Positions 2,410-25,211 of a stretch of 64,000 nt of DNA are shown here, piece by piece (positions within the stretch are counted from its first letter, which is position 1; every line of letters starts with the position of its first letter). The notes under the pieces were generated by a model. That model ran no database searches, was not told the origin of the DNA, and worked only from the letters and a program-made list of their open reading frames with translations. Made by a program: the position numbers and the translations under genes. The DNA comes from Macrostomum lignano (taxonomy: Eukaryota). Location: NCBI GenBank assembly GCA_002269645.1, contig NIVC01000194.1:134053-198052 (forward strand), read 5' to 3'.

Positions 2410-3080
2410 CAACCCATTCACAATCCAGTTTCAACCCGATCACAATCCAGTTCTAACCCATTCTAATCCAGCTCCAACCCATTTCCAATCCAGTTCTAAC
2501 CCATTTGCAATCCAGCTCCAACCAATTCACAATCCAGCTCCAACCCATTCACAATCCAGTTCTAACCCATTTACAATCCAGCTCCAACCCATTTCCAATC
2601 CAGTTCCAACCCACTCAATCCAGTTTCAACCCGATCACAATCCAGCTCCAACCAATTCACAATCCAGCTCCAACCCATTCACAATCCAGCTCCAACCCAC
2701 TCACAATCCAGTTTCAACCCATTCACAATCCAGTTCCAACCCGATCACAATCCAGTTCCAACTCATTCAAAATCCAGTTTCAACCCGATCACAATCCAGC
2801 TCCAACCAATTCACAATCCAGCTCCAACCCATTCACAATCCAGCTCCAACCCATTTACAATCCAGCTCCAACCCATTCACAATCCAGCTCCAACCCATTT
2901 ACAATCCAGCTCCAACCCATTTACAATCCAGCTCCAACCCATTCACAATCCAGCTCCAACCCATTTACAATCCAGCTCCAACCCATTTACAATCCAGCTC
3001 CAACCCATTTACAATCCAGCTCCAACCCATTCACAATCCAGCTCCAACCCATTTACAATCCAGTTCCAACCAATTCACAG
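2410..3080. repeat. 22-bp minisatellite (AACCCATTCACAATCCAGCTCC)
   Basis: Direct tandem repeat; explains the ORF at 2505-3092. Confidence 0.95.
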
Positions 3081-3537
3081 ATGAAAATATAACTAATTCA
3101 GAATCTTGATCTATTTACAATTTTTAGATCCTGTGTGATTCAAGTGTGGAAATGCGTCAAAGGGAGTGAAACCCAGTCAATTAGTGAGCCAGTTATGTCA
3201 TTTTGAATTCTCTAGAAGGTAAAAATGAAAACAATTTTCTTAATTTGGCAAAGCCATACCAGACGTAAAAAGCAAATCTGATATTTAACACTTGAAATTC
3301 AGCGGGCGAGACTTCTCTCCTTTCCACTCTCTCTCTCTTTCTCTCTCTCACAGCTGCATGTACACCGCAGCAGTGCACTCACCGAGTGCGCTGACTCTGT
3401 AACCAAGGTCGCGCAGTTGATTGTACGCGCGCCCATTTTTGAAACAAGCTGGCCATGTCTAAAAATAGACTCGGTGCGCAGCTCTTGTCAATACGAAACT
3501 TGGACGGGGCTCTGGGCGTTGCTTATTAGGGCTGTAG

Positions 3538-5322
3538 GTGAGGGCTCGCACTGCACTGCTCAGCTGTAGCCCCAGCACTGAATCGCGCTCTGAGGCGATG
3601 GTCTCGGAGGCTGCGAGATCTCTGCGCGCTCTGGAAGAGGCCAAGCCGCCTTCAGAAGCTGGTCGGGGTGACCGAGTGAGCAACTACGACGATGCAGGGC
3701 CTCTGGAGTTTGTGAGTCAAGCGGCGGCTGCTGATGATGCAGCGGCGGAAGAAGAAACTACAGGAGAAGCAGAAGCAGAAGCAGCAATTCCAGAAGCTGC
3801 AATTCCAGAAGCAGAAATTCCAGAAGCTGCAATTCCAGAAGCAGCAATTCCAGAAGCAGCGATTCCAGAAGCAGGAATTCCAGAAGCAGGAATTCCAGAA
3901 GCAGTAATTCCAGAAGCAGCAATTCCAGAAGCAGCAATTCCAGAAGCAGGAATTTCAGAAGCTGCAATTCCAGAAGCAGCAATTCCAGAAGCAGCAATTC
4001 CAGAAGCAGCAATTCCAGAAGCAGCAATTCCAGAAGCAGCAATTCCAGAAGCAGCAATTCCAGAAGCAGCAATTCCAGAAGCAGCAATTCCAGAGGCTAC
4101 AGCAGAGGCTGAGCCGGCGGGCCTGGACCCGCTGCTAGTGGAATTCGACAGCGGCGGTCGCAGCTGCCTGGCCCGCTTCGACAAGGCCGCCTTCGACCGT
4201 GCGTTCGGCGCCCACCTGCCCAGCCTCTTCCAGGCGGGCGGCGTCAGCGCTCACCTACGCGACAAGATGCGGGCGCTGCTCGAGGCGTCGCCAGCCGGCG
4301 CGCTGCCCTACGAGTTCTCGCTGCTGTTCAGCTCGACTGAGAGGCGCCAAGTATGCGACCTGCGCGCCGCGGCCTGCCTGGATTATTACCTCGACCGCTT
4401 CGCGTCCTCTTTCCGCGACCTGCCCAGCTCGATCAGAATCGGCGAGTGCGGCATCTGCTTCGCCGAGAGCGTCCTGGTGCGCCAGCGCCGCTGCTGCCGC
4501 CTCCTGGGCTGCTCCGCCTGCCTGGCCGACCACACGCGCTTCGCCCTGGCCAGGGGCCGGCCGTACGTGGGCTGTCCGAGCTGTCCGGTCCTGTTGTCTC
4601 GCGACGAGATTCGCCTGCTGTGCCTGCGCGGCCGGCCGGAATTGCTGCATCGGTACAACCAGCTGCTGGCCGACGCCGAGCGCCTGCCGGACGCAAAGAC
4701 TTGCCCGGACTGCGGCCACGTCTGCCGCCGCGACCCGGACAGAGGGGTCAACGACGTCGAGTGCGAGGCCTGCGGCTTTGCCTGGTGCTTCGCCTGCCAC
4801 GGGCCGCGCCACCCGGGCCGCCGGTGTCCGGACTCGGCCGACTCGGACGGCCAGCTGCTGACCGCCTGGAGCCGCGAGATGCGCCCGGACCCGGACATGG
4901 AGGCCGCCGGGGTCGCCGAGAGTCGTCGGGCGCGCCACTGTCCGGAGTGCCGGGCGCTGATCGAGCGGAACGGCGGCTGCCGCTATGTGAGCTGCACGGT
5001 GTGCCGCACCGAGTTCTGCTACCTGTGCGGCAAGCGGCTCGTGCAGGAGGGCCGCTACTTCGGCCTGCTGCCCAGGCGGCTGCTGGGCGGCCACAGCTCC
5101 CGGCTCAGCGTGTTCGGCTGCAGCGCCGAGTTCCTGCCCGACCGGCCGCGCCTTCGCCGCGCGATCCGTCGAGGCCTACTCGGCGTCGGCATCGGCGGCG
5201 CTGTCATCGTCGCCCTCGCCGCCTCGCCGCTGCTGCTGCTCGCCAGCCCCGTGTGGGCACCAGTGCTGGCTGTCAAGGAGAGGCGGCGGCGCCGGCAGCT
5301 GGGAGAGCAGAGACTGCCATGA
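3538..5322 (+). CDS. RNF217: RBR (RING1-IBR-RING2) E3 ubiquitin ligase with C-terminal membrane anchor, RNF217-like
   Basis: RING1 CGIC...CC...CSAC...CPSC; IBR CPDC...CEACGFAWCFACH; RING2 CPECRALIERNGGCRYVSCTVCRTEFCYLC. The following GHSSRLSVFGC..FLPDRPRLRR plus hydrophobic tail resembles RNF217. The true start is probably ATG 3598 (the track starts at GTG 3538). Confidence 0.85.
   Translation: MRARTALLSCSPSTESRSEAMVSEAARSLRALEEAKPPSEAGRGDRVSNYDDAGPLEFVSQAAAADDAAAEEETTGEAEAEAAIPEAAIPEAEIPEAAIPEAAIPEAAIPEAGIPEAGIPEAVIPEAAIPEAAIPEAGISEAAIPEAAIPEAAIPEAAIPEAAIPEAAIPEAAIPEAAIPEAAIPEATAEAEPAGLDPLLVEFDSGGRSCLARFDKAAFDRAFGAHLPSLFQAGGVSAHLRDKMRALLEASPAGALPYEFSLLFSSTERRQVCDLRAAACLDYYLDRFASSFRDLPSSIRIGECGICFAESVLVRQRRCCRLLGCSACLADHTRFALARGRPYVGCPSCPVLLSRDEIRLLCLRGRPELLHRYNQLLADAERLPDAKTCPDCGHVCRRDPDRGVNDVECEACGFAWCFACHGPRHPGRRCPDSADSDGQLLTAWSREMRPDPDMEAAGVAESRRARHCPECRALIERNGGCRYVSCTVCRTEFCYLCGKRLVQEGRYFGLLPRRLLGGHSSRLSVFGCSAEFLPDRPRLRRAIRRGLLGVGIGGAVIVALAASPLLLLASPVWAPVLAVKERRRRRQLGEQRLP
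3760..4095 (+). repeat. 15-bp in-frame tandem repeat (GAAGCAGCAATTCCA = EAAIP) inside the RBR ORF
   Basis: About 21 units, frame preserved. Confidence 0.95.
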
Positions 5323-5417
5323 CTCTGTCGGAGCATCGGGGATATCCGGCAGTACATTTTGTCCGATTTTTTTACTTTATTTTTCTTTGATTGGCCAAAC
5401 TATTTTTTTGCGGTCTG

Positions 5418-5930
5418 TGGTAGGTCTGGCTGGGGAATAGATAAGGCTGGGGGTCTGGTTGGGGGTAGGTCTGGCTGGGGGTAAGTCTGAATGGGGTAGG
5501 TCTGGCTGGGGTAGGTCTGACTGGGGTAGGTCTGGCTAGGGGTCTGGCTGGGGGTAGGTCTGGATGGGGGTTTGGCTGGGGATAGATATGGCTGGGGGCC
5601 TGGCTGGGGGTCTGGCTGGGGATAGATATGGCTGGGGGTCTGGCTGGGGGTCTGGCTGGGGATAGATATGGCTGGGGGTCTGGCTGAGGGGTAGGTCTGG
5701 ATGGGGGTAGGTCTTGCTGGGGGTAGGTCTGGATGGGGGTAGGTCTGGCTGGGGGTAGGTCTGGATGGGGTAGGTCTTGCTGGGGGTAGGTCTGGATGGG
5801 GGTAGGTCTGGCTGGGGGTAGGTCTGGATGGGGTAGGTCTTGCTGGGGGTAGGTCTGAGGTCTGGATGGGGGTAGGTCTTGCTGGGGGTAGGTCTGGATA
5901 TGTCTGGCTGGGGGTAGGTCTGGATGGGGT
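5418..5930. repeat. G-rich ~16-bp minisatellite (GGGGGTAGGTCTGGCT)
   Basis: Direct tandem repeat just 3' of the RBR stop. Confidence 0.9.
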
Positions 5931-7288
5931 AGGCACTATACTGCAGGGTACGCGCAAGATGAAGAATCCAGAAAAGATTATCACTAATTCGATTAATTAA
6001 TGTATTTTATTACCCGTAATGCTGCCGACTTAATTACCAATGCAATTACTTTGCTTCATCTGATATCCAGCCCTGTATCAGGGGACTCAATACACGTGCA
6101 CAGCTCATTTAAGCATAACTTGGCTCTCGTCTGTCGCTTAGAGGCAGTGAATGCGTTGATTTATGAAAATGCTGAAAACTTTCATAGAACTTTTCCCCGC
6201 GAAATTGTCCTCCCTCTTAAATCCCAATCCAGGGCGGGAGACTGGGGTGTCAGACTGGCAATTCTGACTTCCGCCTCGTCATCAGCTGACACTCCAACCC
6301 AGCTCACCTGTGCCCATTGAGCTCGCGATGGAGCCCCGCAAAGTGCTGCAGGACTGCAGGATGGGAATTAGATAGTGCCAGACTCCCTGGACATCGATTC
6401 CTGATGCAGCCCCGTCCAGCCTCTTCACAAAATCGGCTCAAGTCCGGGACGCGGCCATCCCATTGTTCTCCGATTAGCTTTTATCGGGCGATCAGACTGA
6501 AACTTCTGGATTACCATGGCTGCAGATGAAGAGCTCGCGGAACCGGAAGTCGCCCGGGGGTCCAGGCCATGTGTGATTTTACGGGAAGAGAGTTGGTTGC
6601 GGTGAGCACCGGTAGGACTCGGGAGCCTGCGCTGAGCTGCCCCGATGGTCCCAGGCAGACGGACTGGTTGAAGCAGTTCTAAAAATAAAACCTGCAATTC
6701 AGCTTCCAGCCCCGAAGCTGCCATGGAATCTTGGCTTTGACTGCGGCATTGCGAGGCAAAACAAGCTTGGGAGCAGTGGGCAAAGCCAAGGAAGATAATG
6801 AGGGGGAGGCAGCTCAAACACTGGCCCGTGATCTCGAATAAAACTCTTTTGTTTGCCCTACAAGCATCGCTGGCCTGCTCTCGTTGACAGAGTTGCCAGT
6901 CTGCTGTAATTCCCTCCGCATTCTGGGGCCCAGAAGCCTGTTGGGCCCTGCCAACCTTCCCCGGCTCCCCATGCCTGCAGTGCCAGCCGCCTGTTCGCCC
7001 TGCTCCGTGGAGTCTCCATGGAGACGCGACGCCTCGAGCCCGGGGCGAGGAGGGCCGATTGAAACGCGTCAAAGGTTGAGCAACTGCTGAATTATTTACT
7101 TCTCCCATTGTGAATATTTTGCGCTGTATAATCCTCGCTGTGGGAGTGGGGGGGGGGCGACGGCCCCGCGGCAGCTTCAACCTCTTTGACACGGCCAGGC
7201 CAGAGCCGGCGGGAATTCCAGAAACGAAGAAGCAGCAGTGAAAGCAGCAGCTTCCCCCAGAGCGTCAGCGCCTGTCAGTCAAAGGGCT

Positions 7289-7536
7289 GGGGCGGATTTG
7301 CTCGGGGCGGGCGCGCCTCACCTGCACTGGCCGGTGCCGGGCCGGCGCAGCCAATGCGAGCCGGGCAGCCCGGCCTCCATAAAGTCGGGCACCCGCGGCT
7401 CCGACGCGGCCTTCCTTGCGCACCCCGTTGAGCAATTCGCCTCAAGCCCCGGACTCCTGAACCGCTTGGAAACTCCTGCCTCATTGTCGGTGACTCGTCA
7501 TCGTCCTGCAGCAACAACAGAGCTACCCGGGTGAGT
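7289..7536 (+). promoter_or_regulatory. Putative promoter and non-coding first exon of the neuropeptide gene
   Basis: GC boxes (GGGGCGG at ~7289 and ~7304), CCAAT at 7351, TATA-like CATAAAG at 7378, strong donor CCGG|GTGAGT at 7530/7531, and a matching acceptor TTTTGCAG at 8715 located 24 nt before ATG 8740. Confidence 0.45.
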
Positions 7537-8739
7537 CTGGGAGCTGCTTGGCCTCAGCGGCGCGGGGGGGGGGGGGCGCAGGCCCAATTAGTCAGGACTA
7601 CTTCCTTGCAACCGCATGGAGCGCCAGGAAGAACTATGCAGCCCATTGTGCTGCATAGTTGGAAAATTCGTCACGCATTTGGTCCATTGTTTCTGTTAGA
7701 GCATTGGCCTTCATCAATTTGATGAGGCAGCGTAGGCAGCTGCGGTCTCCGGTTCCTGTTGCCGGAACGGGTCGGGGTCCACATTGGGGGGGGGGGTCCC
7801 TGACCTCCCAGACAACATTTTTTGCGATTCTTCTTCAGACTGCTCTCGTCTGACGCATGGTCCCCGAGGAATTATTTGCTTCCACCGGATAATCCTCACC
7901 AGGCTGCAGGCGCTCTCACCTGTATTTTTCATGATCACAGATTTTCCCCGATCTCTTTTGCCTCTGGGAGAGGCCCCGTCGACTTCATACGGAATAAGTC
8001 AGCACCTGCTTTTGGAGTGAGCTGACCGGTGATGTAGCTTACACGCCCTTGAGCAGCCAGCTTCCTTCATCTCAGATGACGAGCCGTGGGGGGGGCAGCT
8101 GCCAGCCGGGCTGATGAGGCCGATGAGAAGCGGCGATAACCAGCCGGGCCGGGCGCTCATCACTTTTTCTCTTTATCGATCCGGCAGCCTCGGACAAGGA
8201 AGAATTGGAGACAGGATTAGATATTCCCTGTTATCCCTTCATCCCCGTGCCTTTCATATTCATGCTTTTTCCTCTAGCTCTGAAAAGTTGAGAAGTTCTC
8301 CTTTGATGCCTCGTAATTTTCAAGAGTCGAGGCTGAGCTGTTCTCTACCCCCCCCCCCAGCCATGGAAAGGGTCGTGTATGCATCTTTGAGTTTCCAAGT
8401 GCCTTCGCATCGGCATTGTCTTCCCCACCATTGTCTGCTGCTTCTGCCGCTTGTCAGTCACAGCTTCACCTCGGAGACAGTGGCGCCCGTTCGCGCGGGA
8501 ATCTCCGAGGAAATTTTCTTAGGCCTTGCTTCAGAGTGACTGACGCCTCTTTAAGTATTCCCACCTGTGAAGGGATTCATTCCCCAGCCAGCTGGTGGCC
8601 GAGAAGGAACCCAAGGCCTCAGGATGGGGGGCTAAAACTGCCTGAAACTGAGAGCTGCAATCAGGCAATGCCTGTATGGTACAGTGCACGGTCCAAGCAT
8701 GTTCCAATTTTGCAGAACACTCAAGCCCAGACCGACAAC

Positions 8740-9121
8740 ATGAACGGAATCCTGTCGGCCCTGCTGTTCGCCACCGTCTGCCTTGTCTGCCTTGACTCGG
8801 CAACCGCCCGAGCCCGCAGTGAGTTCGCCCCGCGATTCGATTCCCTAACCCCTAACCCGTAACCCTAACCCTAACCTTACTGCTGTTCCAGTGGCGAATC
8901 CCGCGGCGGCCGAGCTGGGCGCGGAGGGCCACTCCGGCCACCAGATCTTTCGGCTGAAGAAGGGCTACCACTTCTTCCGCCTGAAGAAGCCGTCGCCCTC
9001 GGAGCAGGAGGTCTGCGCCATTGACGCCGCCACAGCGCAGGCCCTCGGAGCCGTTGCGGTGAGACTGCTGCCGGCATGCGTCATGGGGCCCAGAAAGAAA
9101 ATCAAATCCAGTCAATCATAG
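8740..9121 (+). CDS. Secreted neuropeptide prohormone (signal peptide + GHSGHQIFRL-KK + GYHFFRL-KK)
   Basis: Exon 8740-8818 (MNGILSALLFATVCLVCLDSATARAR, hydrophobic signal), phase-1 GT-AG intron 8819-8891, exon from 8892 in matching phase. Two related xxxFRL peptides are each followed by a KK cleavage site. The C-terminus is uncertain (possible further donor GTGAGA at 9059). Confidence 0.85.
8843..8880. repeat. Short interstitial telomere-like (CCCTAA)n tract inside a 73-nt intron
   Basis: CCCTAA CCCCTAA CCCGTAA CCCTAA CCCTAA CCTTAC. Confidence 0.85.
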
Positions 9122-11009
9122 CCTAATTGGCAGTTATGAAGCAGGCTGTCACGCAGATGGGGATTAAGGAAATTCGCGCGTGAATTCGGATTAGTTTGGA
9201 ATTAGAGGGGCGTGGAACCGGTGACTAAAAGGGAATTGATGGACGTTGCGTGAGTGCTACTCGAACGCCTCCACCGGGAACAACGAATTTGCAGAGAGCC
9301 GCTCACGAGGGTCGACTGTGCGATGAGGATCGCGAGATGCTGCGCGGCTTCTTGGGCGCCCTGTTTCCATAGAGACCGCGGCCCTCTGGACTTTGGACTT
9401 TGCACCTAAATGAACAAGACAAATGCGCACTGCCAGTGTGAAATCCGAGTAACCAGTTTACTGATTTATTATCAAAGCAAATCGTGCCGCATTGAACATC
9501 TTTGTGACGCTGGGTTGGAGAAATAAACTGAAATGATTATACTGGCCCCTTGGTATCGCATGAGTTGGCATGCATCCCTTTAAAAAGCCACGTGTTTTAT
9601 GAGCTACTTTACTTGGCTTGATTCCAAGCAAACTCAAATTTCTTCTTTGTTCCCAGGTGTTTTGCTTCATGCAATTCAATATGCTTATCATGTGCTTGTC
9701 ATGTGTGCTTGTCAACCGTTGGTAATATTAAACATTTCTGCTTGGAGGGGCCGTGTGCAAGAAGGCGGCTTGAGATTTTCTAGATGAGCAGGATTTCTAG
9801 AGCCACTGCACGATAAAATGTTTGCACCTGCAAGTTCTGCAATTGGAAATTCAGCTACAATTCTTCGTACATCAGCAGCGGCTAGAGCGCACGGCCCCAT
9901 CCCCCTATCAGCCACGCGCATTTCAATTCCCATTAATTTCCAGAGTCGCTTATCGGCAGAGCTGCAGACTTTTGTATAAGTAGGGAGCCAGTTCGATTAA
10001 TGCTGATTTATGGCTATCGGATCCATGAAGGCTAAAACTACAGCTAGCATCGTAAAGGGCATCGATCCCCAACCCAACGTTAGCTTTAATTTGATTGATA
10101 AATGCTAATTTATAAAAATGACACGGAAATAGCAGAGGTTTTAAAAAACAGAAACTGGAAGCCAGATTCTAACAATTAATTGATGGATAGGTTTCTCTCA
10201 TACGTTTTATTAATTCGATCATCTTGGTTGCAATTCGGGCCTTTATGTAGTCACGTAAGAACAGGCAACCGCAACCGTTTTTGTGATATACAATACCTAC
10301 GCGAGATACAGTAACACCATTCACACGTACTGCACAGCAGGCAGTAGCCCTCGTTTATTCTAAAATATGTCATCTGTGAATTATCAACCCAAACTGGAAA
10401 TAATTAGTTCCTTCAATCATAATACCTAGCGCTAAACTGCTTACCAGTAAAATGACAGAACTTAATTCTGAGTGAAGATCAGATAAAGGACAAATTTCTA
10501 CTTAGAATTTTACTACGACAACCGGTAAATCTTCCAGCGATGCAGCATTAACTTAGATTTCTCAATTTGACTTACTATTCACCCTGGACTTTTCCTGCAG
10601 CTTAAATCTGTTCTCAGCAGACGGATTATCCGTTTAATCTAACCATAATTGGATTCTAGGAAAAGTTGCGCCAACTTAAACTTAGCCACAACACTCCGAT
10701 CTTGAAAGGCCCGCTGCCTTCTCGCAAATAGCTAATAATTGTTATTTTATACTTATTAGTTAAAGCTGTTTGTGAATAGGATTTCGTGGATGTTTGATTA
10801 TTATTCTTCATAAAAAAAGTCAAAACTCTACATTTTGGGTCAAAGCTATTTTTTACCACTGGAATGGAATCATGCCCTTAGCGTGGCTTGGGTGGCCAAA
10901 GGCCTTTTTGGCTTTGGCGAGACGATGAATAATAATTTTTTTTGTTAAATAATATATGAATAGGAAAACTTGCTGAAAAGTTATGAATTAAAAAATTTGC
11001 AAAATAGTC

Positions 11010-11770
11010 TATGACTAGCAATCCAGCCCATTTGGGGAGTGCAAAAGGGAAAATGAAAATATTGCTAATATATTAAAGAATAGACCAGTGCTTCCAGTAA
11101 GCCCTGGCATCTTAACGATTCCCCCAGCTGTAAACCTTGACAATAACATCTTAGCAATGCTCCCAGTAAGCCTTGACAATCAATCAGTCAATCAGTTCTG
11201 GATTCAAACAATTCAAGTTGAAGACAAAGAAAGATATCCATAAATTTTACAATTTAAAAAGCTAGGTATAGCTATTTATAACTCATAGCATCAGCTCAAG
11301 AATTGAAGTTTAGTCTATGGCCATAGACATATTGAGCTCTCACTGCAAGAAAAATACACTAATTCAGTAGTGCAACCAGGGGGGGGGGCAAAGCTAAAAA
11401 ATAGCTTTAAGGGGTCTCTGCCCCCTTAGGCAGAGACCCAAAAAAAAATTGAAGGGGGGACCAAGCGAATTTTCACCAAAAACAGAGCCACCTCTCTGCC
11501 CCCCTCCTGGGACTTTACCTTCCAGAATCTGCCCCCCCCCCTCAAAAAATTTCTGGTTGCGCTACTGCACTAATTAGATAGGGAGAATACAGTTTTTCGA
11601 ATATTTGATCCCTTTAGCATTGAGCAATTTCTTAGCCACGACCCATGTACCATCATGGATAAATTTCTGATCGAATGATGCATGCAAGTTTTGTGGAAAT
11701 TGGTTGAGCCATTTTTTCTATTATCTATCACATAGACAGACAAAGACAGCTTAGATTTAGTATATTAGAT
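11010..11770 (+). mobile_element. Helentron/HINE (DINE-1-like) non-autonomous element, copy 1, interrupted by a MITE
   Basis: Starts ACTAGCAATCCAGCCC and ends ...TTGGTTGAGCCATTTTTTC...CAGACAGACA...TAGTATATTAGAT. The 3' part is homologous to 14570-14745 and to the reverse complement of 16162-16345. Family assignment is by resemblance only. Confidence 0.45.
11365..11567. mobile_element. 203-bp MITE with 8-bp TSD (hAT-type)
   Basis: TIR CAGTAGTGCAACCAG / CTGGTTGCGCTACTG (14/15 match). Exact TSD CACTAATT at 11357-11364 and 11568-11575. Confidence 0.9.
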
Positions 11771-11774
11771 AGAA

Positions 11775-14745
11775 GACTAGCAATCTTCGCCCCCCGATGG
11801 GGGACATCTGGATAGAATCTCTGTTCTCTACACGGATCAAAAACACATCCAAATAAAGCCTTCACAAAGACAATATACAAACTGCTCAAATGAAGAGCAA
11901 TGCGAAAAGAAAACATCCCAAGACAGCATGCAAGCATCCCCCCCAGATAGCAAGCACCCCCAGATAGCAAGCACCCCCCCCCATAGCAAGCATCCAATTG
12001 ATAGCAAGTATCTATCCTTAAATAGCAAGCATCCACCAGACAATAAGTATCTAGTGCAACAATTTTCTTAGCTTTATGGTGGCTTCTTTATGATTGGCAT
12101 GACGCTTCTTTTTACGTTTGTAATTGTCTCTTTTATGTTTGGCATGGTGGCTCTTTTATGTTTGACATGGTGGCTCTTTAATGTTTGACATGGTGGCTCT
12201 TTTATGTTTTACATGGTGGGTCTTTAATGTTCGACATGATGGCTCTTTAATGTTTGACATGGAGTCACAAATATGTTTGACCTGGTGGCACTTTACTGTC
12301 TGCAATGATGGCTCTTTAATGTTTGACATAGAGTCACGTATACGCTTGACATGGTGACTCGTTAATGTTTGACATGGTGGCTCTTTAATGTTTTACATGG
12401 TGGCTCTTTTATGTTCGACATGGTGGCTCTTTAACGTTCGATATGGTGGCTCTTTAATGTTCGACATGGAGTCACATATATGTTAGACATGGTGGCTCTT
12501 TAATGTTCGACATGGAGTCACATATATTTTAGACATGGTGGCTCTTTAATGTTGGACATGGTGACTTTTTAATGTTCGACATGGTGACACTTTAATGTCT
12601 GAAATGATGGCTCTTTAATGTTTGACATGGAGTCACGTATACGCTTGACATGGTGACTCGTTAATGTTTGACATGGTGGCTCTTTAACGTTCGACATGGT
12701 GGCTCTTTAATGTTAGACATGGTGGCTCTTTAATGTTTTACATGGTGGCTCTTTTATGTTCGACATGGTGGCTCTTTAACGTTCGACATGGTGGCTCTTT
12801 AATGTTTGACATGGAGTCACATATATGTTGGACATGGTGGCTCTTTAATGTTGGACATGGTGGCTCTTTAATGTTAGACATGGTGGCTCTTTAAATTTTT
12901 TTCATGGTGGCTCTTAAATGTTTGACATGGTGGCTCTTTATTATTTGACATGGTGGCTCTTTAATGTTTGACATGGTGGTTCTTTAATGTTCGACATGGT
13001 GGCTCTTTAATGTTCGACATGGTGGCTCTTTAATCTTCAACAAAGTGGCTCATTTACGTTTGACATGGTGGCTCTTTAATGTTTGACATGGTGGCTCTTT
13101 AATGTTTGACATTGTAGCTCTTAAATGTTCGACATGGTGGTTCTTTTACGTTTGACATGGTGGCTCTTTAATGTTTGACATTGTAGCTCTTAAATGTTCG
13201 ACATGGTGGTTCTTTTACGTTTGACATGGTGGCTCTTTAATTTTCGACATGTTGGCTCTTTTATGTTTGACATGGTAGCTCTTTAATTTTCGACAAAGTG
13301 GCTCTTTAATGTTTGACATGGTGGCTCGTTAATGTTTGACATGGTGGCTCTTTAATGTTTGATATGGTGGCTCTTTTATGTTTTACATGGTGGGTCTTTA
13401 ATGTTCGACATGATGGCTCTTTAATGTTTGACATGGTGGCTCTTTAATGTTTGACCTGGTGGCACTTTACTGTCTGCAATGATGGCTCTTTAATGTTTGA
13501 CATGGAGTCACGTATACGCTTGACATGATGACTCGTTAATGTTTGACATGGTGGCTCTTTAATTTTTTACATGGTGGCTCTTTTATGTTCAATATGGTGG
13601 CTCTTTAACGTTCGACATGGTGGCTCTTTAATGTCTGAAATAATGGCTCTTTAATGTTTGACATGGAGTCACGTATACGCTTGACATGGTGGCTCTTTAA
13701 TGTTAGACATGGTGGCTCTTTAATGTTTTACATGGTGGCTCTTTTATGTTCGACATGGTGGCTCTTAAATGTTTGACATGGTGGCTCTTTATTATTTGAC
13801 ATGGTGGCTCTTTAATGTTTGACATGGTGGTTCTTTAATGTTCGACATGGTGGCTCTTTAATGTTCGACATGGTGGTTCTTTTACGTTTGACATGGTGGC
13901 TCCTTAATGTTCGACATGTCGGTTCTTTTACGTTTGACATGGTGGCTCTTTAATGTTCGACATGGTGGCTCTTTTATGTTTGACATGGTAGGTCTTTTAT
14001 ATTCGACATGGTGGCTCTTTAATGTTTGACATTGAGTCACAAATATGTTTGACATGGTGGCTTTTTAATGCTTGACATGAAGTCACTTATATGTTGGACA
14101 TGGTGGCTCTTTAATGTTCGACATGGTGCCACTGATATGTTTGACATTGTGCTTCTTTTATGTTTAGCAGTTTCATGTTTTCAAGGTGTTTTAATAAAAA
14201 AATTATTTTGCACTACTAAGATTCGAACCTAGGTCGCTACATTAGCATTCCAGTCTGTTCGCATCTGGGCTATCTCTTTTCAATTGGAGTACATCAATTG
14301 TGGCCCTTATAATTCAATTCTTACAGCAAGTCAATTAGAGTAAAAAGTTATGACATAATCAATTTCTCAGTCAGCCAGTATCAGTTTCAATTCAAGTTAG
14401 CAATATTGGTTACGCAATTTAAATCAAGTCGTGTGTGCATTTCTTCGGCACTGTTTTCTACTTGTTGTGATGCAATCTTTATCAGAATTGAAATTCAGTC
14501 AGTCAGGTTTTTTTCTAGCATTCTTACAATGCATTTCAAGTCGAAAATTTTGCTTGACCTTTGCAAAAAAGCATGTTTTTTCGAATATTTAATCCCTTTA
14601 ATATATAGCAATTTCTTAGCCAAGATGCATGTACCGTCCCAGGAAAATTTCTGATCGAATGGTGCAAGTTTGAAGAAAATCAGTTAAGCCAATTTTTCTG
14701 AAATCTATCGCATACCCACAGACAACTCATTTTTAGTATATAGGA
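11775..14745 (+). mobile_element. HINE-like element, copy 2, carrying a ~2-kb 23-bp satellite array
   Basis: Starts ACTAGCAATCTTCGCCCCCGATGGGG immediately after copy 1, then satellite 12090-14160, unique body 14161-14745, and ends TAGTATATAGGA. Confidence 0.55.
12090..14160. repeat. 23-bp satellite (TTTGACATGGTGGCTCTTTAATG), about 90 heterogeneous units
   Basis: Direct tandem repeat. Confidence 0.95.
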
Positions 14746-16161: not shown

Positions 16162-17837
16162 TCCTATATACTAAAAATGAGTTGTCTGTATGCATATGGG
16201 TAAGCGATTGATTAGAGAAAAAATGGCTCAACCAATTTTTTTTAAACTTTCACCATTCAATCGGAAATTTTCCTGGGACAGTACAGCATCTTGGCTAAGA
16301 GATTGCTCAATGTTAAAGGGATTAAATATTCAAAAAACATCCTTTTTTACAAAGGTCAAGCAGCTCTTTTGACCTGAAATGCATTGTAAGAATGCTAGAG
16401 ACAAAACTGACTGACTGAATTTTGATTCTGATAAAGATTGTATCACAACAAGTTGAAAACAGTGCCAAAGAAATGCACGCAAGACTTGATTCAAATTGTG
16501 TAACCAATATTGCTAACTTGAATTTGAGACTGATACTGGTTGACTGAGAAATTGATTATGTCTTAACTATTTACTCTAACTGACTTGCTGTAAGAATTGA
16601 GTTATAAGGGCAGCAATTCATATTCTCCAATTGAAAAGAGATAGCCTAGATGCAAATAGACTGGATTGCTAATGTAGTGACCTGGGTTCGAATCTTAGTA
16701 GTGCAAAAAGATTTTTTTATTAATAAAACACCTTAAAAACCAAAAATGTTGAACATAAAAAAGCACAATGTCAAACACAAAAGAGCCACCATGTCAAACA
16801 TAGAAGAGACACCATGTCAAACATAGAAGAGCCACCATGTCAAGCATACATGTGACTCCATGTCAAACAATAAAGAGCCACCATGTCAAGCATACACGTG
16901 ACTCCATGTCAAACAATAAAGAGCCACCATGTCAAGCATACACGTGACTCCATGTCAAACAATAAAGAGCCACCATGTCAAGCATACACGTGACTCCATG
17001 TCAAACAATAAAGAGCCACCATGTCAAGCATACACGTGACTCCATGTCAAACAATAAAGAGCCACCATGTCAAGCATACACGTGACTCCATGTCAAACAA
17101 TAAAGAGCCACCATGTCAAGCATACACGTGACTCCATGTCAAACAATAAAGAGCCACCATGTCAAGCATACACGTGACTCCATGTCAAACAATAAAGAGC
17201 CACCATGTCAAACATACACGTGACTCCATGTCAAACAATAAAGAGCCACCATGTCAAGCATACACGTGACTCCATGTCAAACAATAAAGAGCCACCATGT
17301 CAAGCATACACGTGACTCCATGTCAAACAATAAAGAGCCACCATGTCAAACAATAAAGAGCCACCATGTCAAGCATACACGTGACTCCATGTCAAACAAT
17401 AAAGAGACACCATGTCAAACATAGAAGAGCCACCATGTCAAGCATACACGTGACTCCATGTCAAACAATAAAGAGCCACCATGTCAAGCATACACGTGAC
17501 TCCATGTCAAACAATAAAGAGCCACCATGTCAAGCATACACGTGACTCCATGTCAAACAATAAAGAGCCACCATGTCAAGCATACACATGACTCCATGTC
17601 AAACAATAAAGAGCCACCATGTCAAACAATAAAGAGCCACCATGTCAAACATTAAAGAGCTACCATGTCAAACAATAAAGAGCCACCATGTCAAACAATA
17701 AAGAGCCACCATGTCAAACATTAAAGAGCTACCATGTCAAACAATAAAGAGCCACCATGTCAAACAATAAAGAGCCACCATGTCAAACATTAAAGAGCCA
17801 CCATGTCAAACATTAAAGAGCTACCATGTCAAACATT
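16162..17837 (-). mobile_element. HINE-like element, copy 3, inverted relative to copy 2, with the same satellite
   Basis: 16162-16770 is the diverged reverse complement of 14140-14745 (TCCTATATACTAAAAATGAGTTGTCTG). The satellite at 16770-17837 is the reverse complement of the 23-mer. Confidence 0.7.
16770..17837. repeat. 23-bp satellite in reverse orientation with a homogenised 46-bp dimer
   Basis: GAGCCACCATGTCAAGCATACACGTGACTCCATGTCAAACAATAAA repeated with a 46-bp period (e.g. 16875, 16921). Confidence 0.95.
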
Positions 17838-18726: not shown

Positions 18727-21700
18727 ATGTCAGGCGCTGGCTACTCATTCCTGCTGTTTGAAATTGTCTGCGTAGTCTTGCTAACAGCTTCTCTGCTGCA
18801 TCACTATGGCAACTGGCGGAGGCAGCAGCTGGTGGTCACCGGAGTCACATTTCTGGCCTGGCAGTTCTGCTTTCTGATCGTCTTCATACTGCCTACTGAC
18901 ATCAACTGTGTAAGCAATGGGCTGCTGAGTAGTATAAAATGCAGCAGGAATTCCAGCTCACTGAGTTACCGAACCCGCAGACATTCTATGAGGACTGCCT
19001 GATGAGCAACGTCTCCGGCCTGGAGGCCAACGGCACCTCTGCGCCAGCCTGCCGGGAGCCGTGGAACCATATTCCCAGGGCATTTCTGGTCAGCTTCTGG
19101 CGCGTCATCTACTGGTCCTGCCAGTTCCTTACCTGGTGTGTGTTTAGTTCCTATTCGCTTCTGGCCTGGTTATGCCAGATGGTTATGCTAGGAGCTGCTT
19201 TGTAAAGCTTTCGTGATTTGGTATCTCATGCGTTGAGATTTCAGGGTCTGGTATCTCATGGATTGAGATTTCAGGGTCTGGTATCTCATGGGTTGAGATT
19301 TCAGGGTCGGGTATCTCATGCGTTGAGATTTCAGGGTATGGTATCTCATGGGTTGAGATTTCAGGGTCTGGTATCTCCTGGGTTGAGATTTCAGGGTCTG
19401 GGGTTGAGATTTCAGGGTCTGGTATCTCCTGGGTTGAGATTTCAGGGTCTGGTATCTAATTGGTTGAGATTTCAGGGTCTGGTATCTCCTGGGTTGAGAT
19501 TTCAGGGTCTGGTATCTAATTGGTTGAGATTTCAGGGTCTGGTATCTAATTGGTTGAGATTTCAGGGTCTGGTATCTAATTGGTTGAGATTTCAGGGTCT
19601 GGTATCTAATTGGTTGAGATTTCAGTGTCTGGTATCTAATTGGTTAGATTTCAGGGTCTGGTATCTAATTGGTTGAGATTTCAGGGTCTGGTATCTAATT
19701 GGTTGAGATTTCAGGGTCTGGTATCTAATTGGTTGAGATTTCAGGGTCTGGTATCTAATTGGTTGAGATTTCAGGGTCTGGAACCTCATAGGTACGATTC
19801 GGAAATCTGGATTGTATGTCTCATTATTGGGATTTGGCAGCTGGTTTTTATCCTTTGATTTGTGACCAAGCATACCAATTTCTTCCCCAGGATTTTCTTG
19901 CCCATCATGCAGTCCTACGCCAAGGCGGGCGAGTTCAACGTCCTGGGCAAAGTGAAGGTCTCCCTGGTTGACAATGCGTTGTACTATTCGACCTACCTGC
20001 TCATCTTTGCCATCTGCTTCATCTATGTGGCCACTAGACCGGACATTCACATTGATTTGTAAGTTGAACTCCTTGATTATAATTATTTACTATCGGGCTA
20101 CTACTACTAAATAGCTAGGAGCACTGAGTAGCTATCTGAGCAGTGTGAGTAGCTATCTGAGCACTGAGTAGCTATCTGAGCACTGTGAGTAGCTATCTGA
20201 GCACTGTGAGTAGCTATCTGAGCACTGTGAGTAGCTATCTGAGCACTGTGAGTAGCTATCTGAGCACTGTGAGTAGCTATCTGAGCACTGTGAGTAGCTA
20301 TCTGAGCACTGTGAGTAGCTACCAACTAGAAATTCTATAAAGAGAAACGGACCACAAATTCCAGTGCCCAACTCCGCGTGATCGGCATCACGGCCAGCAA
20401 CACCTGGGGCCTGGTGCTCATCGTGCTGTTCCTCGGCTACGGCCTGGTCGAGCTGCCCCGCACCGTCTGGAGCGCCGGCTGTCCGGGCGAGAGCCTGAAG
20501 CGGGCCTACTTCCGGCTGGCCAAGGTCAACTCGGAGCTCATCGAGCACCAGGAGGAACTGGAGGACCTGGCCGCCGAGGCCGTCCAGCTGGCCGAGTGCG
20601 TGCCCGGCCCGGAGCATCCGCTTGCTGCCAATGCCCGGACAGTGGCCGAGCTGGCCGAGAGCAGCGGCTACTGCGGAGGACGCGACGCCGGGCTCGGCCG
20701 GGGCAAACCGACCGCTTCGTCCATCGCGGCGGCCAGGCGGCGGCTAAACGAAGACGAGGACGGCGGCGGCCTCACAGCGAAGCGGCTGGTGAAGCTGCAC
20801 TGCCAGCTAAAGAAGGCGATCGGCCTGGAGCAGCGGAGCCGCTGCCTGCTGCAGGTGCGGGGGTTGCTGGGGCTTCTGCTAATTTGTTGTTCTCCTGACA
20901 TTCAGTTCTTGTCGGATACGAATGTTTAAATTGTTTCTTAGAATTTGATCCAAAGGTGAGAGGCCAAGAATCTGAGATTCTAAAGGTGAGAGGCCAAGGA
21001 TCCAGTATTCAATAAGTAGATTTCTCAGTCCATTCGAAAATCCGCCCCAATTCTCGCTGTCCCAGGAGGCCTACGCCTCGGCCGCCTTCCTGGAGGACAT
21101 CGAGTCCAACCGCGGCTCCCGGCTGCACTTCTTCCGTCGCGGCGAGGGCGACTTCGATAGCGAAAGCGGCGGACTCCTGCGGCGCCTGCTGGGCCCGGGC
21201 GTGGAGTTCTACTGGAAGTGCCACGCCCGCAGCTGGCTGCTCCGCGGCGCCGCCTGCTTCCTGCTGGCCGCGTCCGGCCTCATGCTGTGGTGCGAGTGCA
21301 CCTTCTTTATTAAGTGGCCGGTGCTGACCCGCTGGCCCTGCTGGTGCAGGCCGGCCGCGGCGCCCTGTCGGTGCAGCTGATCTGCCTGCTGGCCATCGGC
21401 TACCTGTGCGCCTGCACCTACTTCACCGTGTTCCGCCTGAAGCTGTTCAACTACTTCCGCCTGGTGCCCAACCACCAGACAGACGAGAACAGCCTCATCT
21501 TCAGCGGCATGCTGTTCTGCCGGCTCACCCCGCCGCTGTGCCTGAACTTCCTGGGCCTGGTGCACCTGGACTCCCACCTGGCCAGCGGGTTGAAGGCGCA
21601 GACGGCCTACACTCAGCTAATGGGCCATCTGGATCTCGTGGCCATCATCTCCAATGGTGTCAACCTGTACTTCCCCATCGCCATCCTGTTGCTGGCCTTG

Positions 21701-22670
21701 GCCAGCTACTTCCGGCTGGGCAGCCGCCTGCTGCACTGCCTGGGCGTGCAGCAGTTCATCAGCTCGGACGATGAGCTCACCTCCGACTTGCTGGAGGAGG
21801 GCCGACTGCTGCTTCGCAGAGGTGAGACAATTGCTGGTAACGCTCAATAGTGACTAGTAAGGGCTAGTAGTGGCCAATAGTAGGTACTAGTGGCTAATAG
21901 TAGCTAGTAGTGGCTAGTAGCTGTAGCTAGTAGTGGCTAATAGTAGCTAGTAAGTGACTAGTAATGCTTAGTAGTGGCTAGTAATGACTAGTAGTAGCTA
22001 GTGGTGGTCAATAGTAGCTAGTAGTGGCTAGTAATGCTTAGTAGTGGCTAGTAAGGACTAGTAGTAGCTAGTAGCGGCTAATAGTATCTAATTGTGGCTA
22101 TCTAATTGAGCCTAGTAGTGGCTAGTATTGCCTAGTAGTGGCTAGTAGTAGCTAGCAGTGACTAGAAGTAGCTAGTAGTGGCTAATAGTAGCTAGTAGTG
22201 GCTAGTAGTGCCTAGTAGTGGCTAGTAATGCCTAGTAGTGGCTAGTAGACGTAGATCAAGAGAAATCCAAGCCCCGCACCAACCACCGACTTTTCACAGA
22301 GCGCGCCAGGCGTAGCCGCGGCGCCCCCGGCGGCAGCAGCTCGACTGGCGGCCTGTTGAAAAGCACCGACAGCGGCGACGAGGAGGACGAGCTGTTTGCG
22401 CGGAAGCCACCGCCAGCGCGCCAGCTTCCCAGGAGCTCCGGGGCTGCCGGCGCTGCTGCGGCACCTGTCGCCGAGCTGTCACCGTCGCCGCCGCGATCGA
22501 GTCGCTTTGAGCGGCTGCTGCAGGCGGACGGCGAGCCGGTGGAGTTCGAGGCCGACACGCAGCCGCTGTTCCCGTCGGCCAGAGCTGCCGTACAGCAGCA
22601 GCAGCTCCGCCAGCAGCCGCCGCCCTACAAGTCTGGCAGCGGGCGGGGCGGATTTTTTGATGATGTCTGA
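18727..22670 (+). CDS. LMBRD2: LMBR1 domain-containing protein 2, 6 exons, with one apparent 1-nt frameshift
   Basis: Exons 18727-18909, 18981-19135, 19891-20058, 20365-20854, 21066-21821, 22300-22670, all GT-AG with compatible phases. Motifs: MSGA..FEIV, FWRVIYWSCQFLTW, LPIMQSY, ASNTWGL, HQTDENSLIFSGMLFCRLTPPLCLNFL, C-terminal FDDV. One C is missing at ~21328-21330. Confidence 0.93.
19215..19780. repeat. 27-bp intronic minisatellite (LMBRD2 intron 2)
   Basis: GGTTGAGATTTCAGGGTCTGGTATCTAATT-type units. Confidence 0.95.
20122..20322. repeat. 21-bp intronic minisatellite (LMBRD2 intron 3)
   Basis: TGAGTAGCTATCTGAGCACTG units. Confidence 0.95.
21850..22250. repeat. TAG-rich degenerate minisatellite (LMBRD2 intron 5)
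   Basis: TAGTAGTGGCTAGTA-type units. Confidence 0.9.
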
Positions 22671-24049
22671 CTGGCTGTCCTGACCTTCTAGTGGACCTTG
22701 AATCCTCCTAGTGCACCTTGAATCCTCCTAGTGTACCTTGAACCCTCCCAGTGTACTTAAAATCCTTATTCCTTAGTAAAACCATATGCCCAAGTCAGCT
22801 GTTGTGGCCCCATGCCTTGCCTTTCTTCTCTGTGATTTATTGGGATCAATTTCTGATTATTTTACCTGTTGTTTTATCTGTGCAAATGTTAAAACTGTTG
22901 GTTGTCATCGGAGAACTCGGTGCGTCTATTGTAGCCTTGTCAAAGCCGTGTTGTTCCAGTGCATTATCGTACAGCAAGTACTCTGTCTTGTTTTATTTTT
23001 AACCGTCTTCCCATGCATATTCCTTATTTAAGCTTGGGATCTGCACTGCTGATTCCGCAGGTTACAAATTTGTAAATTGACGATTCCAGTCACGCGTGCA
23101 TTGTTGTACTCATTTCCGCTGTTTACTACTGTTAGTAGTGTTGTATCTGTGCCGTTGTCTGTCTGCGAATAATTCCATTATTGAGTCTTTATTCATCAGC
23201 TCTTTATCCTTTCTTTAGCCTGTGTTATACGCTCGTACTATATATTAATAAATACACTTACTAAGGCAGAGTGAGAAGACTTATGGCGATTATTCTGAAA
23301 ATTTTAATTTTCGCTTGTCGCGATCTGACTCGTTTTTTTTTCACACGCTACTTGCAGTAGCGCAGTTGGGATACAATAAACTTAAGTTGTCTCAGAAAAA
23401 ATGGAATCAGCTCTGAAATATCCCTCTTTTAATCTATAAAAAGCTCATTAAAAGAACTGCTTTTCTCGCGTATTCTCATCATGCTACTTTTAGTGACGAG
23501 TAGCGTTTGATTTTAAAATCAGCTGTGGCGGTATAGAAAAATAATGAACAGTAATGATACAAGCTAGCATGCTAAGAGATTTAAAAGTCAATCCATGTGC
23601 CTTCAATATTTTAAAGTAGAAGAGTCATCTACAGGAGGTTGCGGTTTTGTCAGGCCACAGTTCATGTGGCTTATGTACACAAACTAAATGTACATGTTGA
23701 CCCGAGGCTGGTTCCTGCATGCAGAGAAGCAAAGCGGTTCCCGTTTCGAATGCTTCTAGTAAAGCTTAAAATAATTTTAAATGCCGATCCATGAGCAAAT
23801 GCAGCAGTGGATTGAATGCAAAGCTTGGGTTCTTCTGGCTCACAGCGGCCTGCTCAGCCAGCCAGACCGGTCCTGAATGCGGCCAATCCCAGTTAGCAAA
23901 TTCTTCGAGTGCAACTAAAGTTCGCCGACGTTGTAAATTACTTTGATCACATCGGCGTGCTGCTCTGAGAAAGTTGGTCCCCGTCTCTCTCTGTCTTTGT
24001 TTTATTTGTGTCCGTCTTCCGTTTTGCTAGTGTCATGTACGGTCTGTCG

Positions 24050-24127
24050 ATCTGTCTGTCTGTCAGCGTGTGTCTGTCTGCCTACCTGTCTGTCTACCTG
24101 CCTGTCTGTCTTTCTATCTGCCTGCCG

Positions 24128-24159
<32 letters not shown>

Positions 24160-24610
24160 GCCTGCCGGTCTATCTATCAGCCCGTGTCTGTCTGTCTGTG
24201 TGTCTACCTGCCTTTCTATCTGCCTGCCAGTCTATCTATCAGCCTGTGTCTGTCTGTCTGTCTGTCTACCTGCCTGTCTATCTGCCTGACAGTCTGTCTG
24301 TCAGACTGTGTCTGTCTGTCTGTGTGTCTACCTGCCTGTCTATCTGCCTGCCGGTCTGTCTGTCTGTCTGTCTGTCTACCTGCCTTTCTATCTGCCTGCC
24401 AGTCTATCTATCAGCCTGTGTCTGTCTGTCTGTGTGTCTACCTGCCTTTCTATCTGCCTGCCGGTCTATCTATCAGCCTGTGTCTGTCTGTCTGTGTGTC
24501 TACCTGCCTTTCTATCTGCCTGACAGTCTGTCTGTCAGACTGTGTCTGTCTGTCTACCTGCCTGTCTACCTGCCTGCCGGTCTGTCTGTCAGCCTGTGTC
24601 TGTCTGTCTT
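24050..24610. repeat. Compound (TCTG/TCTA/CCTG)n microsatellite with higher-order periodicity
   Basis: Explains the Cys/Leu/Ser/Val ORFs at 23943-24716. Confidence 0.95.
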
Positions 24611-25211
24611 TCCCATCAAGGCTCAGATGCCAAAGGAGATGAGGCAGATCTGGAGACTGAACTGCCCGGTCCAGCGTGCCACAGTATGCAATATTTATTC
24701 GCTAAATAGTCCATAGCATCTATGTAAATAGGAAAGTGAGGTGTACGGCCGAAGCGTTCTGATTTAGCAATACGTGTATTATAAATATGCTGTCGGATAT
24801 CGGGCTAATTTAGTTAATGAACAGCAAGCAGCAACAATCTGTTGCGGGTGGCGCCTAAGTGAGAATTTGCCGCACAGATGATGCAGAGATATTCTTTAAA
24901 CGGCTCTAGCAAGTTAGACTATGGATTAATAATTTTAATAGCAATATTTAAAGAAAAACACACAGCAGACGCGGAGGCTGGGCATCTCAAGATGTCGCGC
25001 GTGAGGAACAAAAATGTGACGAGGCAAACAGTTGACGAAGATCAGCTTAACCTAAACAGCAAAACGCAGCCCCAGCCTGATAGATTAAGACATAATCCGG
25101 TCCGGGACGGGGCTTGAGAAATCTTCACCAGCTTACTGGCAGAGCTGCCTTGCATGGCGACTCGGATTCAGCTTGGATACGGGCACAATGAGGCTTCCAC
25201 TGGAATAACAT

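Follow-up and report, generated by a model that had tools for sequence, protein, structure and literature searches.

A member of the FRL-containing prohormone family in Macrostomum lignano and its apparent relation to a GnRH-like precursor

The FRL-containing prohormones have been described in planarians, where grh-1, spp-18 and spp-19 were grouped under this name (Collins et al., 2010; PMC2953531). According to the same report, Smed-SPP-19 is arranged as MNGTVILCTLIVLLASFPSDGSDDLIVKR-KHIGHQIFRL-KR-GYHFFRL-RK-DEKC...LCGSDKSFLAELASLL, Smed-SPP-18 holds one GYHFFRL and Sma-NPP-28 one AYHFFRL. The peptides KHIGHQIFRL, HQIFRL and GYHFFRL, the last of which is encoded by both SPP-18 and SPP-19, were detected in the planarian by mass spectrometry (MS) (Collins et al., 2010), and the masses tabulated there for them (1247.73, 812.47 and 938.48, in this order) equal those computed for the free acids and not those of the amides. 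The conservation of the family between planarians and schistosomes was published in the same report (PMC2953531), and the planarian spp-18 and spp-19 genes are known to mark discrete subsets of neurons (PMC4214590).

The precursors of the family differ in their layout. In the grh type (Smed-grh-1, BOX15_Mlig008027g1 of Macrostomum lignano and GnRH-2 of Stylochoplana), a GnRH/corazonin-like peptide and GKR come directly after the signal peptide and are followed by two FRL peptides (FRL-1 and FRL-2) and a tail with two cysteines; the GnRH/corazonin-like peptides of these precursors read QQFHFSHG(VN)GWKPG, QSYHFSNDWLPG and QNMHFSNGWQPG. The SPP-19 type consists of FRL-1, FRL-2 and the tail, and the SPP-18/NPP-28 type of FRL-2 and the tail. 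In the latter group (Smed-spp-18, Schistosoma npp-28 (Smp_043650) and homologs), [GA]YHFFR[LI] is located between dibasic sites, an amide donor is lacking and the tail has two cysteines; the heptapeptide is the single FRL peptide of the precursor, without the upstream GHQIFRL copy that is present in the gene described here. The FRL family and its planarian-schistosome conservation have been known since 2010, and what is new is a functional name for the M. lignano member. A literature search, which included the gene identifiers, found no description of this member, and an earlier one may exist.

All positions given below are those of the window, i.e., the whole 64,000-nt stretch of DNA that was analysed (contig NIVC01000194.1:134053-198052, assembly GCA_002269645.1). 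The window is eukaryotic, with a patchy GC content of 32-66% and many minisatellites, and an adjoining open reading frame (ORF) for an IBR/RBR ligase is 97% identical to a Macrostomum lignano protein. The locus studied here is the M. lignano gene BOX15_Mlig013730g2, with four exons, three of which are coding:

7262-7489, + strand: non-coding 5'UTR exon, with an approximate 5' limit and a GT donor at 7490 (GTGACT)
7490-8715, + strand: 5'UTR intron of ~1.2 kb, from the mapping of the UniRef model P0018, with GT at 7490 and AG at 8714-8715 (acceptor TTTTGCAG)
8716-8818, + strand: exon in which the final 24 nt of the 5'UTR precede coding exon 1, the latter beginning at the ATG at 8740
8819-8891, + strand: coding intron 1, 73 nt, phase 1, with the donor G/GTGAGT, a pyrimidine tract and a CAG acceptor; it includes a degenerate telomere-like CCCTAA run
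8892-9058, + strand: coding exon 2 (residues 27-82), encoding the linker, the two FRL peptides and the N-terminal half of the tail
9059-9294, + strand: coding intron 2, 236 nt, phase 0, with the donor GCG/GTGAGA at 9059 and the acceptor TTTGCAG/ at 9294
9295-9372, + strand: coding exon 3 (residues 83-107), encoding RAAHEGRLCDEDREMLRGFLGALFP with Cys91 and the motif LCxxD[RK]xxL, and the stop at 9370-9372
9522-9527, + strand: AATAAA, a candidate polyadenylation signal 150 nt 3' of the stop

The start ATG is read directly in the window, with an A at -3. Coding exon 1 (8740-8818) provides 26 codons and the first base of codon 27, and the reading frame is kept where exon 2 takes over at 8892 (A + TG = Met27); without splicing, the frame meets stops within intron 1. 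For the junction from 8818 to 8892, which had been proposed in a sequence-only reading of this DNA, donor, acceptor and phase can all be read, and the earlier model holds over the first two-thirds of the gene; its end at 9121 has to be given up, as the gene runs to 9372. The three-exon product of 107 aa matches exactly GenBank PAA88377.1, "hypothetical protein BOX15_Mlig013730g2". The gene called in GenBank occupies window positions 8740-9372 on NIVC01000194.1, and the locus fetched for this protein is identical to window 7240-10872; the gene is, in other words, not hidden, as it had been called, but annotated without a functional name. A second, independent annotation (UniRef A0A1I8... entries) has the identical two coding introns and the 5'UTR exon, and the N-terminus of the 191-aa UniRef models (P0017 and P0018) is translated 5'UTR that maps to 7274-7489 and then to 8716. 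The two annotations give the transcript indirect support. In the protein collection, three GenBank accessions and two UniRef entries correspond to the 107-aa product. The location of the conserved second Cys and of LCxxD[RK]xxL in exon 3 gives independent support to the three-exon model.

In a Pfam-A hmmscan (E <= 10) of the 107-aa protein, of the model P0017 and of the Mlig008027 protein, no family was found, and the name "BofC_C domain" carried by UniRef A0A1I8HZR7 and A0A1I8GL14 has no Pfam support and looks like an automatic mislabel. A Rfam scan of the window found no RNA family, and no further gene copies or F[RK][LIM][KR][KR] motifs were present in a plausible ORF within the window.

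The spliced product starts with MNGILSALLFATVCLVCLDSATARARMANPAAAELGAEGHSGHQIFRLKKGYHFFRLKKPSPSEQEVC... and continues as MNGILSALLFATVCLVCLDSATARARMANPAAAELGAEGHSGHQIFRL-KK-GYHFFRL-KK-PSPSEQEVC.... Its parts are the following:

8740-8808, + strand: predicted signal peptide, residues 1-23 (MNGILSALLFATVCLVCLDSATA), from hydrophobicity, the -3/-1 rule and the family alignment
8895-8912, + strand: ANPAAA, residues 28-33, opposite WKPGKR of the paralog (coordinates hand-derived from the codon frame)
8936-8956, + strand: residues 42-48, GHQIFRL, the core of the first FRL peptide; KK comes next, at 8957-8962
8963-8983, + strand: GYHFFRL, residues 51-57, between KK at 8957-8962 and KK at 8984-8989
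8990-9058, + strand: first part of the tail (PSPSEQEVCAIDAATAQALGAVA), with Cys68; the whole C-terminal tail has 48 residues

The N-terminus is predicted to be a cleavable signal peptide by a hydrophobicity heuristic and by alignment: the hydrophobic core covers residues 4-18, with a Kyte-Doolittle 11-residue mean of up to 2.95, the small residues A-T-A at -3/-1 make a cut after A23 likely, and the sequence aligns with the annotated signal peptides of Smed-SPP-19, Smed-SPP-18 and Sma-NPP-28. Downstream, KK-GYHFFRL-KK (residues 49-59, window 8957-8989) has dibasic sites on both sides. The sequence ...FRL-KK occurs twice and Gly is absent before either KK, so both FRL products are predicted to be free acids, as had been suggested from the sequence and in agreement with the free-acid masses tabulated for the planarian peptides. 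Since no dibasic site precedes GHQIFRL, but only R24-A-R26, the N-terminal limit of mature peptide 1 is uncertain, and possibly no short form of it is released; an example of an extended form is the predicted 22-mer MANPAAAELGAEGHSGHQIFRL (M 2276.11).

The three-exon protein aligns end to end with the family precursors, and K49, YHFFRL, K59, C68, I70, C91 and D94 are invariant in a 4-sequence alignment. It combines a signal peptide (by heuristic), a dibasic-bounded [GA]YHFFRL, the absence of Gly, a 2-Cys tail and similarity to the named members. In the family, two conserved Cys stand ~20 residues apart, the second within LCxxD[RK]xx[LI]; Cys68 and Cys91, the latter within LCDEDREML, provide this feature in the three-exon model and not in the two-exon one. 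The upstream ...GHQIFRL before GYHFFRL and the lack of a GnRH-like peptide after the signal peptide are those of the SPP-19 subtype. In a single BLASTP comparison, the window protein matched Smed-SPP-19 with E = 6e-13 (45.8 bits), and the presence of two identical heptapeptides in equal order and with equal dibasic spacing puts this resemblance, as judged from the sequences, far beyond chance. The gene can be assigned on these grounds to the flatworm FRL-containing prohormone family, with the SPP-19 layout. The likeness to planarian HQIFRL and GYHFFRL products that had been pointed out in the sequence-only reading turned out to be exact, these being the SPP-19 peptides of Collins et al. (2010), and the homologous precursors whose absence would have spoken against a prohormone were found (SPP-19, SPP-18, GRH-1 and NPP-28). 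The prohormone interpretation, with a signal peptide and dibasic sites freeing two ...FRL peptides, is supported by the reading of the sequence and by homology, while the gene model is corrected.

Smed-spp-19 (UniProt E3T7U8) has the same order of parts as the window gene (signal peptide, linker, GHQIFRL, dibasic site, GYHFFRL, dibasic site and 2-Cys tail), and both proteins start with MNG, lack a Gly donor and have an LCxxDxxFL tail motif. By contrast, the linker of the window protein is longer and no dibasic site precedes its peptide 1, where SPP-19 has KR-KHIGHQIFRL; in the window protein, moreover, five extra residues are inserted ahead of Cys1 and the C-terminus extends further. Its tail is identical to that of the grh-type paralog Mlig008027 at 12 of 41 residues and to that of SPP-19 at 8 of 39, and the window gene may not be a strict ortholog of Smed-spp-19.

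Macrostomorpha are an early-branching lineage of rhabditophoran flatworms. The spread of the family was followed by two profile searches. In the first, a profile of literature sequences was run on a word-indexed collection; in the second, 1.84 billion representatives were searched exhaustively with HMMER, using a profile built without the window gene. The latter retrieved the cluster representative of the window gene (P0017) with E = 5.6e-4 among 1.84 billion proteins. Matches were found in planarians and other free-living flatworms (Schmidtea, M. lignano and the polyclad Stylochoplana pusilla, "gonadotropin-releasing hormone-2" BCO16381.1) and in parasites (Schistosoma species, Trichobilharzia, Opisthorchis, Fasciola, Fasciolopsis, Calicophoron, Paragonimus and Spirometra/Sparganum), so that the recovery of Macrostomum, planarians, a polyclad, trematodes and cestodes bears out the earlier suggestion of a family conserved across distant flatworm lineages. 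All the trematode and cestode matches have the SPP-18/NPP-28 layout, and precursors without a GnRH-like peptide are the only form detected in these two groups. In the exhaustive profile search no match at E <= 0.001 lay outside Platyhelminthes apart from P0029, a 556-aa repeat protein from ENA that looks like a false positive. When the spliced product was used as a single query against a 5.8-billion-protein collection, nothing was obtained at E <= 10, with database-scaled E values that are harsh on 100-residue proteins and with the window's own protein apparently outside the scored set.

The tail is the only part of the precursor that is predicted to fold. In an AlphaFold2 model built on a 15-sequence alignment the peptide region is disordered (pLDDT ~50) and the tail forms a helix-loop-helix (pLDDT 94-95; helices 72-86 and 92-105), with Cys68 and Cys91 just before the two helices. 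This position and the conservation of both residues suggest that a Cys68-Cys91 disulfide probably staples the helical hairpin. A Foldseek search of the tail against the PDB gave no significant fold match (best E ~6, meaningless). The C-terminal piece with a cysteine, earlier put forward as a possible third product, proved to be conserved and predicted to fold, with two conserved Cys and not one. It might be asked whether the folded tail is itself the functional product, as a small secreted protein hormone or as a sorting/chaperone domain in the manner of an associated peptide, and the FRL peptides are by-products. Besides its predicted fold, the invariance of Cys1 through the phylum, the presence of Cys2 in every full-length member and the Asp after Cys2, invariant in the four aligned sequences and common in the wider family, are in favor of a role for the tail. 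We consider it nevertheless unlikely that the peptides are by-products: no other stretch in the family is as conserved as YHFFRL, with a heptapeptide nearly identical from Macrostomum to cestodes, which is unexpected for a spacer, and the short peptides reach MS-detectable levels in planarians, with no tail peptide among the MS peptides considered here (Collins et al., 2010). The two readings are, moreover, not mutually exclusive.

In all likelihood, then, the gene encodes a 107-residue FRL-family preprohormone of SPP-19 layout that is secreted and processed to FRL peptides. The signal peptide (residues 1-23) would route the precursor to the secretory pathway in a subset of neurons, where a PC2-type prohormone convertase would cut on the C-terminal side of K49K50 and of K58K59, and perhaps of R24-A-R26 as well, and a carboxypeptidase would trim the lysines. 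Three free-acid products would result, i.e., an N-terminally extended ...GHQIFRL, GYHFFRL and the 48-residue helix-loop-helix tail, and the short peptides would most likely act on one or more G-protein-coupled receptors. The PC2 homolog of M. lignano has neural expression and is indispensable, its knock-down being lethal (PMC4490696). For the window gene, neuronal expression and peptide processing are inferred by analogy with the planarian genes, the only ones for which both have been shown.

A close relative within M. lignano is the grh-type paralog BOX15_Mlig008027g1 (PAA94807.1 and copies), whose product is composed of a signal peptide, QQFHFSHGVNGWKPGKR, GLAEEGHAGHQIFRL-KK-GYHFFRL-KK and a 2-Cys tail. 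The window protein matches it with a BLASTP E = 7e-22 (70.9 bits). GYHFFRL and the shortest GHQIFRL forms are common to both, and the 75 nt coding for the peptides are 89% identical at the DNA level. The Mlig008027 locus has three coding exons, with intron positions and phases equal to those of the window gene, namely a phase 1 intron just upstream of the linker and a phase 0 intron eight residues before Cys2. The window gene and the grh-type precursors thus have FRL-1, FRL-2 and the 2-Cys tail in common, but the GnRH/corazonin-like peptide with GKR that directly follows the signal peptide of the latter is absent from the former, whose exon 1 encodes the signal peptide alone. A GnRH-like HFS or GWxPG motif is absent both from exon 1 and from positions 5000-12000 of the + strand, a search of the window revealed neither a GnRH-like peptide nor an alternative first exon, and the signal peptide is not followed by the GnRH/corazonin pattern pGlu-x-[FY]-H-F-S-x-(x)-G-W-x-P-Gly and then GKR/KR. 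Between the splice site and the Gly-His that immediately precedes GHQIFRL, exon 2 of the two genes can be aligned gap-free, and this places ANPAAA of the window protein opposite WKPGKR of the paralog. ANPAAA would accordingly be the positional remnant of the C-terminus of a GnRH-like peptide with its Gly-Lys-Arg amidation/cleavage signal. Because the GnRH-like peptide is absent and ANPAAA is found instead, the gene is best read as derived from a precursor of this kind, rather than as a GnRH-like hormone gene: it appears to be a duplicate of a grh-type gene in which the GnRH-like peptide was lost and the rest was kept. The link between the FRL-peptide family and GnRH-like precursors had not been noted in the sequence-only reading.

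The GnRH-associated peptide (GAP) of the GnRH/AKH/corazonin precursors of other animals likewise comes after the hormone and its GKR site. The FRL peptides and the 2-Cys tail would be the associated-peptide part of the flatworm GnRH-like precursors; unlike the GAP, the associated region of flatworms is cut into conserved short peptides, and in the exhaustive profile search it had no sequence relative outside Platyhelminthes at E <= 0.001.

The loss of a hormone from a duplicate may also be the beginning of its decay, and in M. lignano, which became polyploid recently, redundant copies are numerous (PMC12896417). The disappearance of the GnRH-like peptide and of its GKR signal, with ANPAAA in the place of WKPGKR and no GnRH-like motif near the gene, would be compatible with a pseudogene in the making that yields no functional product. 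We hold this to be very improbable. A syntenic copy on NIVC01001143.1 (L002) has, at the expected place, a called 107-aa gene one residue off the window model, a variant that corresponds to PAA71739.1 and PAA88328.1 (g3 and g1, respectively), and neither the ORF and splice sites nor the two FRL peptides, the four Lys and the two Cys show any damage in the DNA of the window and of L002 or in the proteins g1, g2 and g3. Between window and L002, the 324 coding nt differ by 3 substitutions (2 synonymous and 1 Phe>Leu), with none in the 167 nt of exon 2, whereas the two coding introns (309 nt) differ by 5 substitutions and 1 indel and the 1 kb flanks (1000 nt) by 16 substitutions and 8 indel columns. 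The lower number of differences in the coding sequence than in introns and flanks argues against a decaying duplicate and, within the limits of such small numbers, these counts point towards purifying selection on the window gene. The coding sequence has, in addition, a GC3 of 0.82, and SPP-19, with the same layout devoid of the GnRH-like peptide, is produced and cleaved to peptides in planarians, as documented by MS (Collins et al., 2010), while precursors lacking the GnRH-like peptide are the only form detected in trematodes and cestodes.

That the two-exon gene (8740-8818 + 8892-9121; 102 aa with one tail Cys) is the real product, alone or as an intron-2-retention isoform, can hardly be credited: the frame is open from 9059 to a TAG at 9119-9121 and an intron-retaining mRNA would give the 102-aa protein, but this sequence is absent from the 15-billion-protein collection in which the 107-aa one is present, its last 20 residues, the read-through tail VRLLPACVMGPRKKIKSSQS, are translated from the first 63 nt of intron 2 and lack the second-Cys context LCxxD[RK]xxL supplied by exon 3, and intron 2 has the same position and phase in the paralog Mlig008027.

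Returning to the three-exon gene as a member of the FRL family derived from a grh-type precursor, its greater closeness to Mlig008027 than to Smed-SPP-19 gives a hint, and only a hint, that the layout without the GnRH-like peptide arose independently in Macrostomum and in planarians. The neighbour-joining tree and the identity matrix used in this comparison comprise ~60 sites, without bootstrap, and are suggestive only and not proof of independent loss. A broader and tentative proposal, which we judge possible though not probable, is that FRL peptides and helical 2-Cys tail form an ancestral, phylum-wide module that came from a GnRH/corazonin-type associated peptide and was freed repeatedly and independently, through duplication followed by decay of the GnRH-like peptide, in Macrostomum and in planarians (spp-19 and spp-18). 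If true, such repeated freeing would mean that the module has a receptor and a function of its own, apart from GnRH-type signalling.

With this assignment, a "hypothetical protein" of M. lignano gains a functional name and the "BofC_C" UniRef label is corrected. The FRL family is present in Macrostomorpha, polyclads, planarians, trematodes and cestodes, with a heptapeptide that is almost unchanged. No receptor for any FRL-family member was found reported in the literature; the conserved, non-amidated GYHFFRL is a clear candidate for receptor deorphanisation, and M. lignano is a transgenic, RNAi-amenable model. As the same peptide family is present in parasitic flatworms, the receptor could be of interest for parasite neurobiology. 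The apparent remnant of the GnRH-like C-terminus would offer an example of a multi-product hormone precursor shedding one of its products after duplication, and it is this evolutionary relation to a GnRH-like gene that we regard as the most interesting aspect of the locus.

The prohormone gene of the window (BOX15_Mlig013730g2) stands among other recognizable genes, and the order SHIP-like phosphatase, RBR ligase, prohormone and LMBR1 is common to the window and to the syntenic contig that carries the second copy of the prohormone gene (NIVC01001143.1), in which the SHIP-like gene is complete. The neighbouring genes in the window are:

94-945, + strand, SHIP-like inositol phosphatase gene, SAM-domain C-terminus
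3538-5322, + strand, IBR/RBR-type E3 ligase ORF, 97% identity to BOX15_Mlig024448g1
20378-21850, + strand, LMBR1-like membrane protein exons
27331-28515, - strand, KH-domain RNA-binding protein gene
62585-63642, + strand, gene for a G-protein beta subunit (match to Pfam WD40_Gbeta at E = 2e-83)

The ligase ORF holds an in-frame minisatellite, with about 25 copies of (A/G)IPEA in the coding sequence (about 3717-4184). In the G-protein beta gene, about 140 N-terminal residues lie in a different frame from the remainder, and the switch near 63000 points to either a frameshift or an intron of very small size.

Coding intron 1 of the prohormone gene contains a degenerate interstitial telomere-like run, CCCTAACCCCTAACCCGTAACCCTAACCCTAACC (8843-8877), which takes up half of the 73 nt of the intron and includes the sole tandem (CCCTAA)2 in the window. 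The run is kept in the second copy of the gene, and it is lacking from intron 1 of the paralog on NIVC01000001.1. The two 191-aa UniRef models of the prohormone, A0A1I8HZR7 and A0A1I8GL14, include translated 5'UTR and have no start codon; both are labelled "BofC_C domain-containing protein", a name that is probably an automatic mislabel, because Pfam finds no BofC_C domain in either model.

Minisatellite arrays are very numerous in the window, and on either strand they open several reading frames over long distances, producing spurious ORFs. They occupy:

28533-31358, about 2.8 kb
1474-2063, 2505-3092, 5400-5984, 19218-19676 and 23943-24716
26394-27308, 32015-32630, 42856-43842 and about 55000-56400

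The syntenic copy has an expanded version of the array at 1548-2064. A dispersed repeat at 35230-35610, probably a transposable-element fragment, is 74% identical to positions 16472-16843 of the paralog's locus, the contig of which is otherwise unrelated.

This paralog, BOX15_Mlig008027 (10001-10877 of the same locus), is a GnRH/corazonin-like precursor gene of M. lignano that bears no functional name and is present in at least four copies (proteins P0008, P0019, P0020 and P0021). The hormone peptide varies among them, being QQFHFSHGVNGWKPGKR in P0008, P0019 and P0020 vs QQFHFSHGWKPGKR in P0021, the latter having the usual length for invertebrate GnRH-type peptides. The extra VNG in the hormone may reflect either a mis-called splice site or a real variant.
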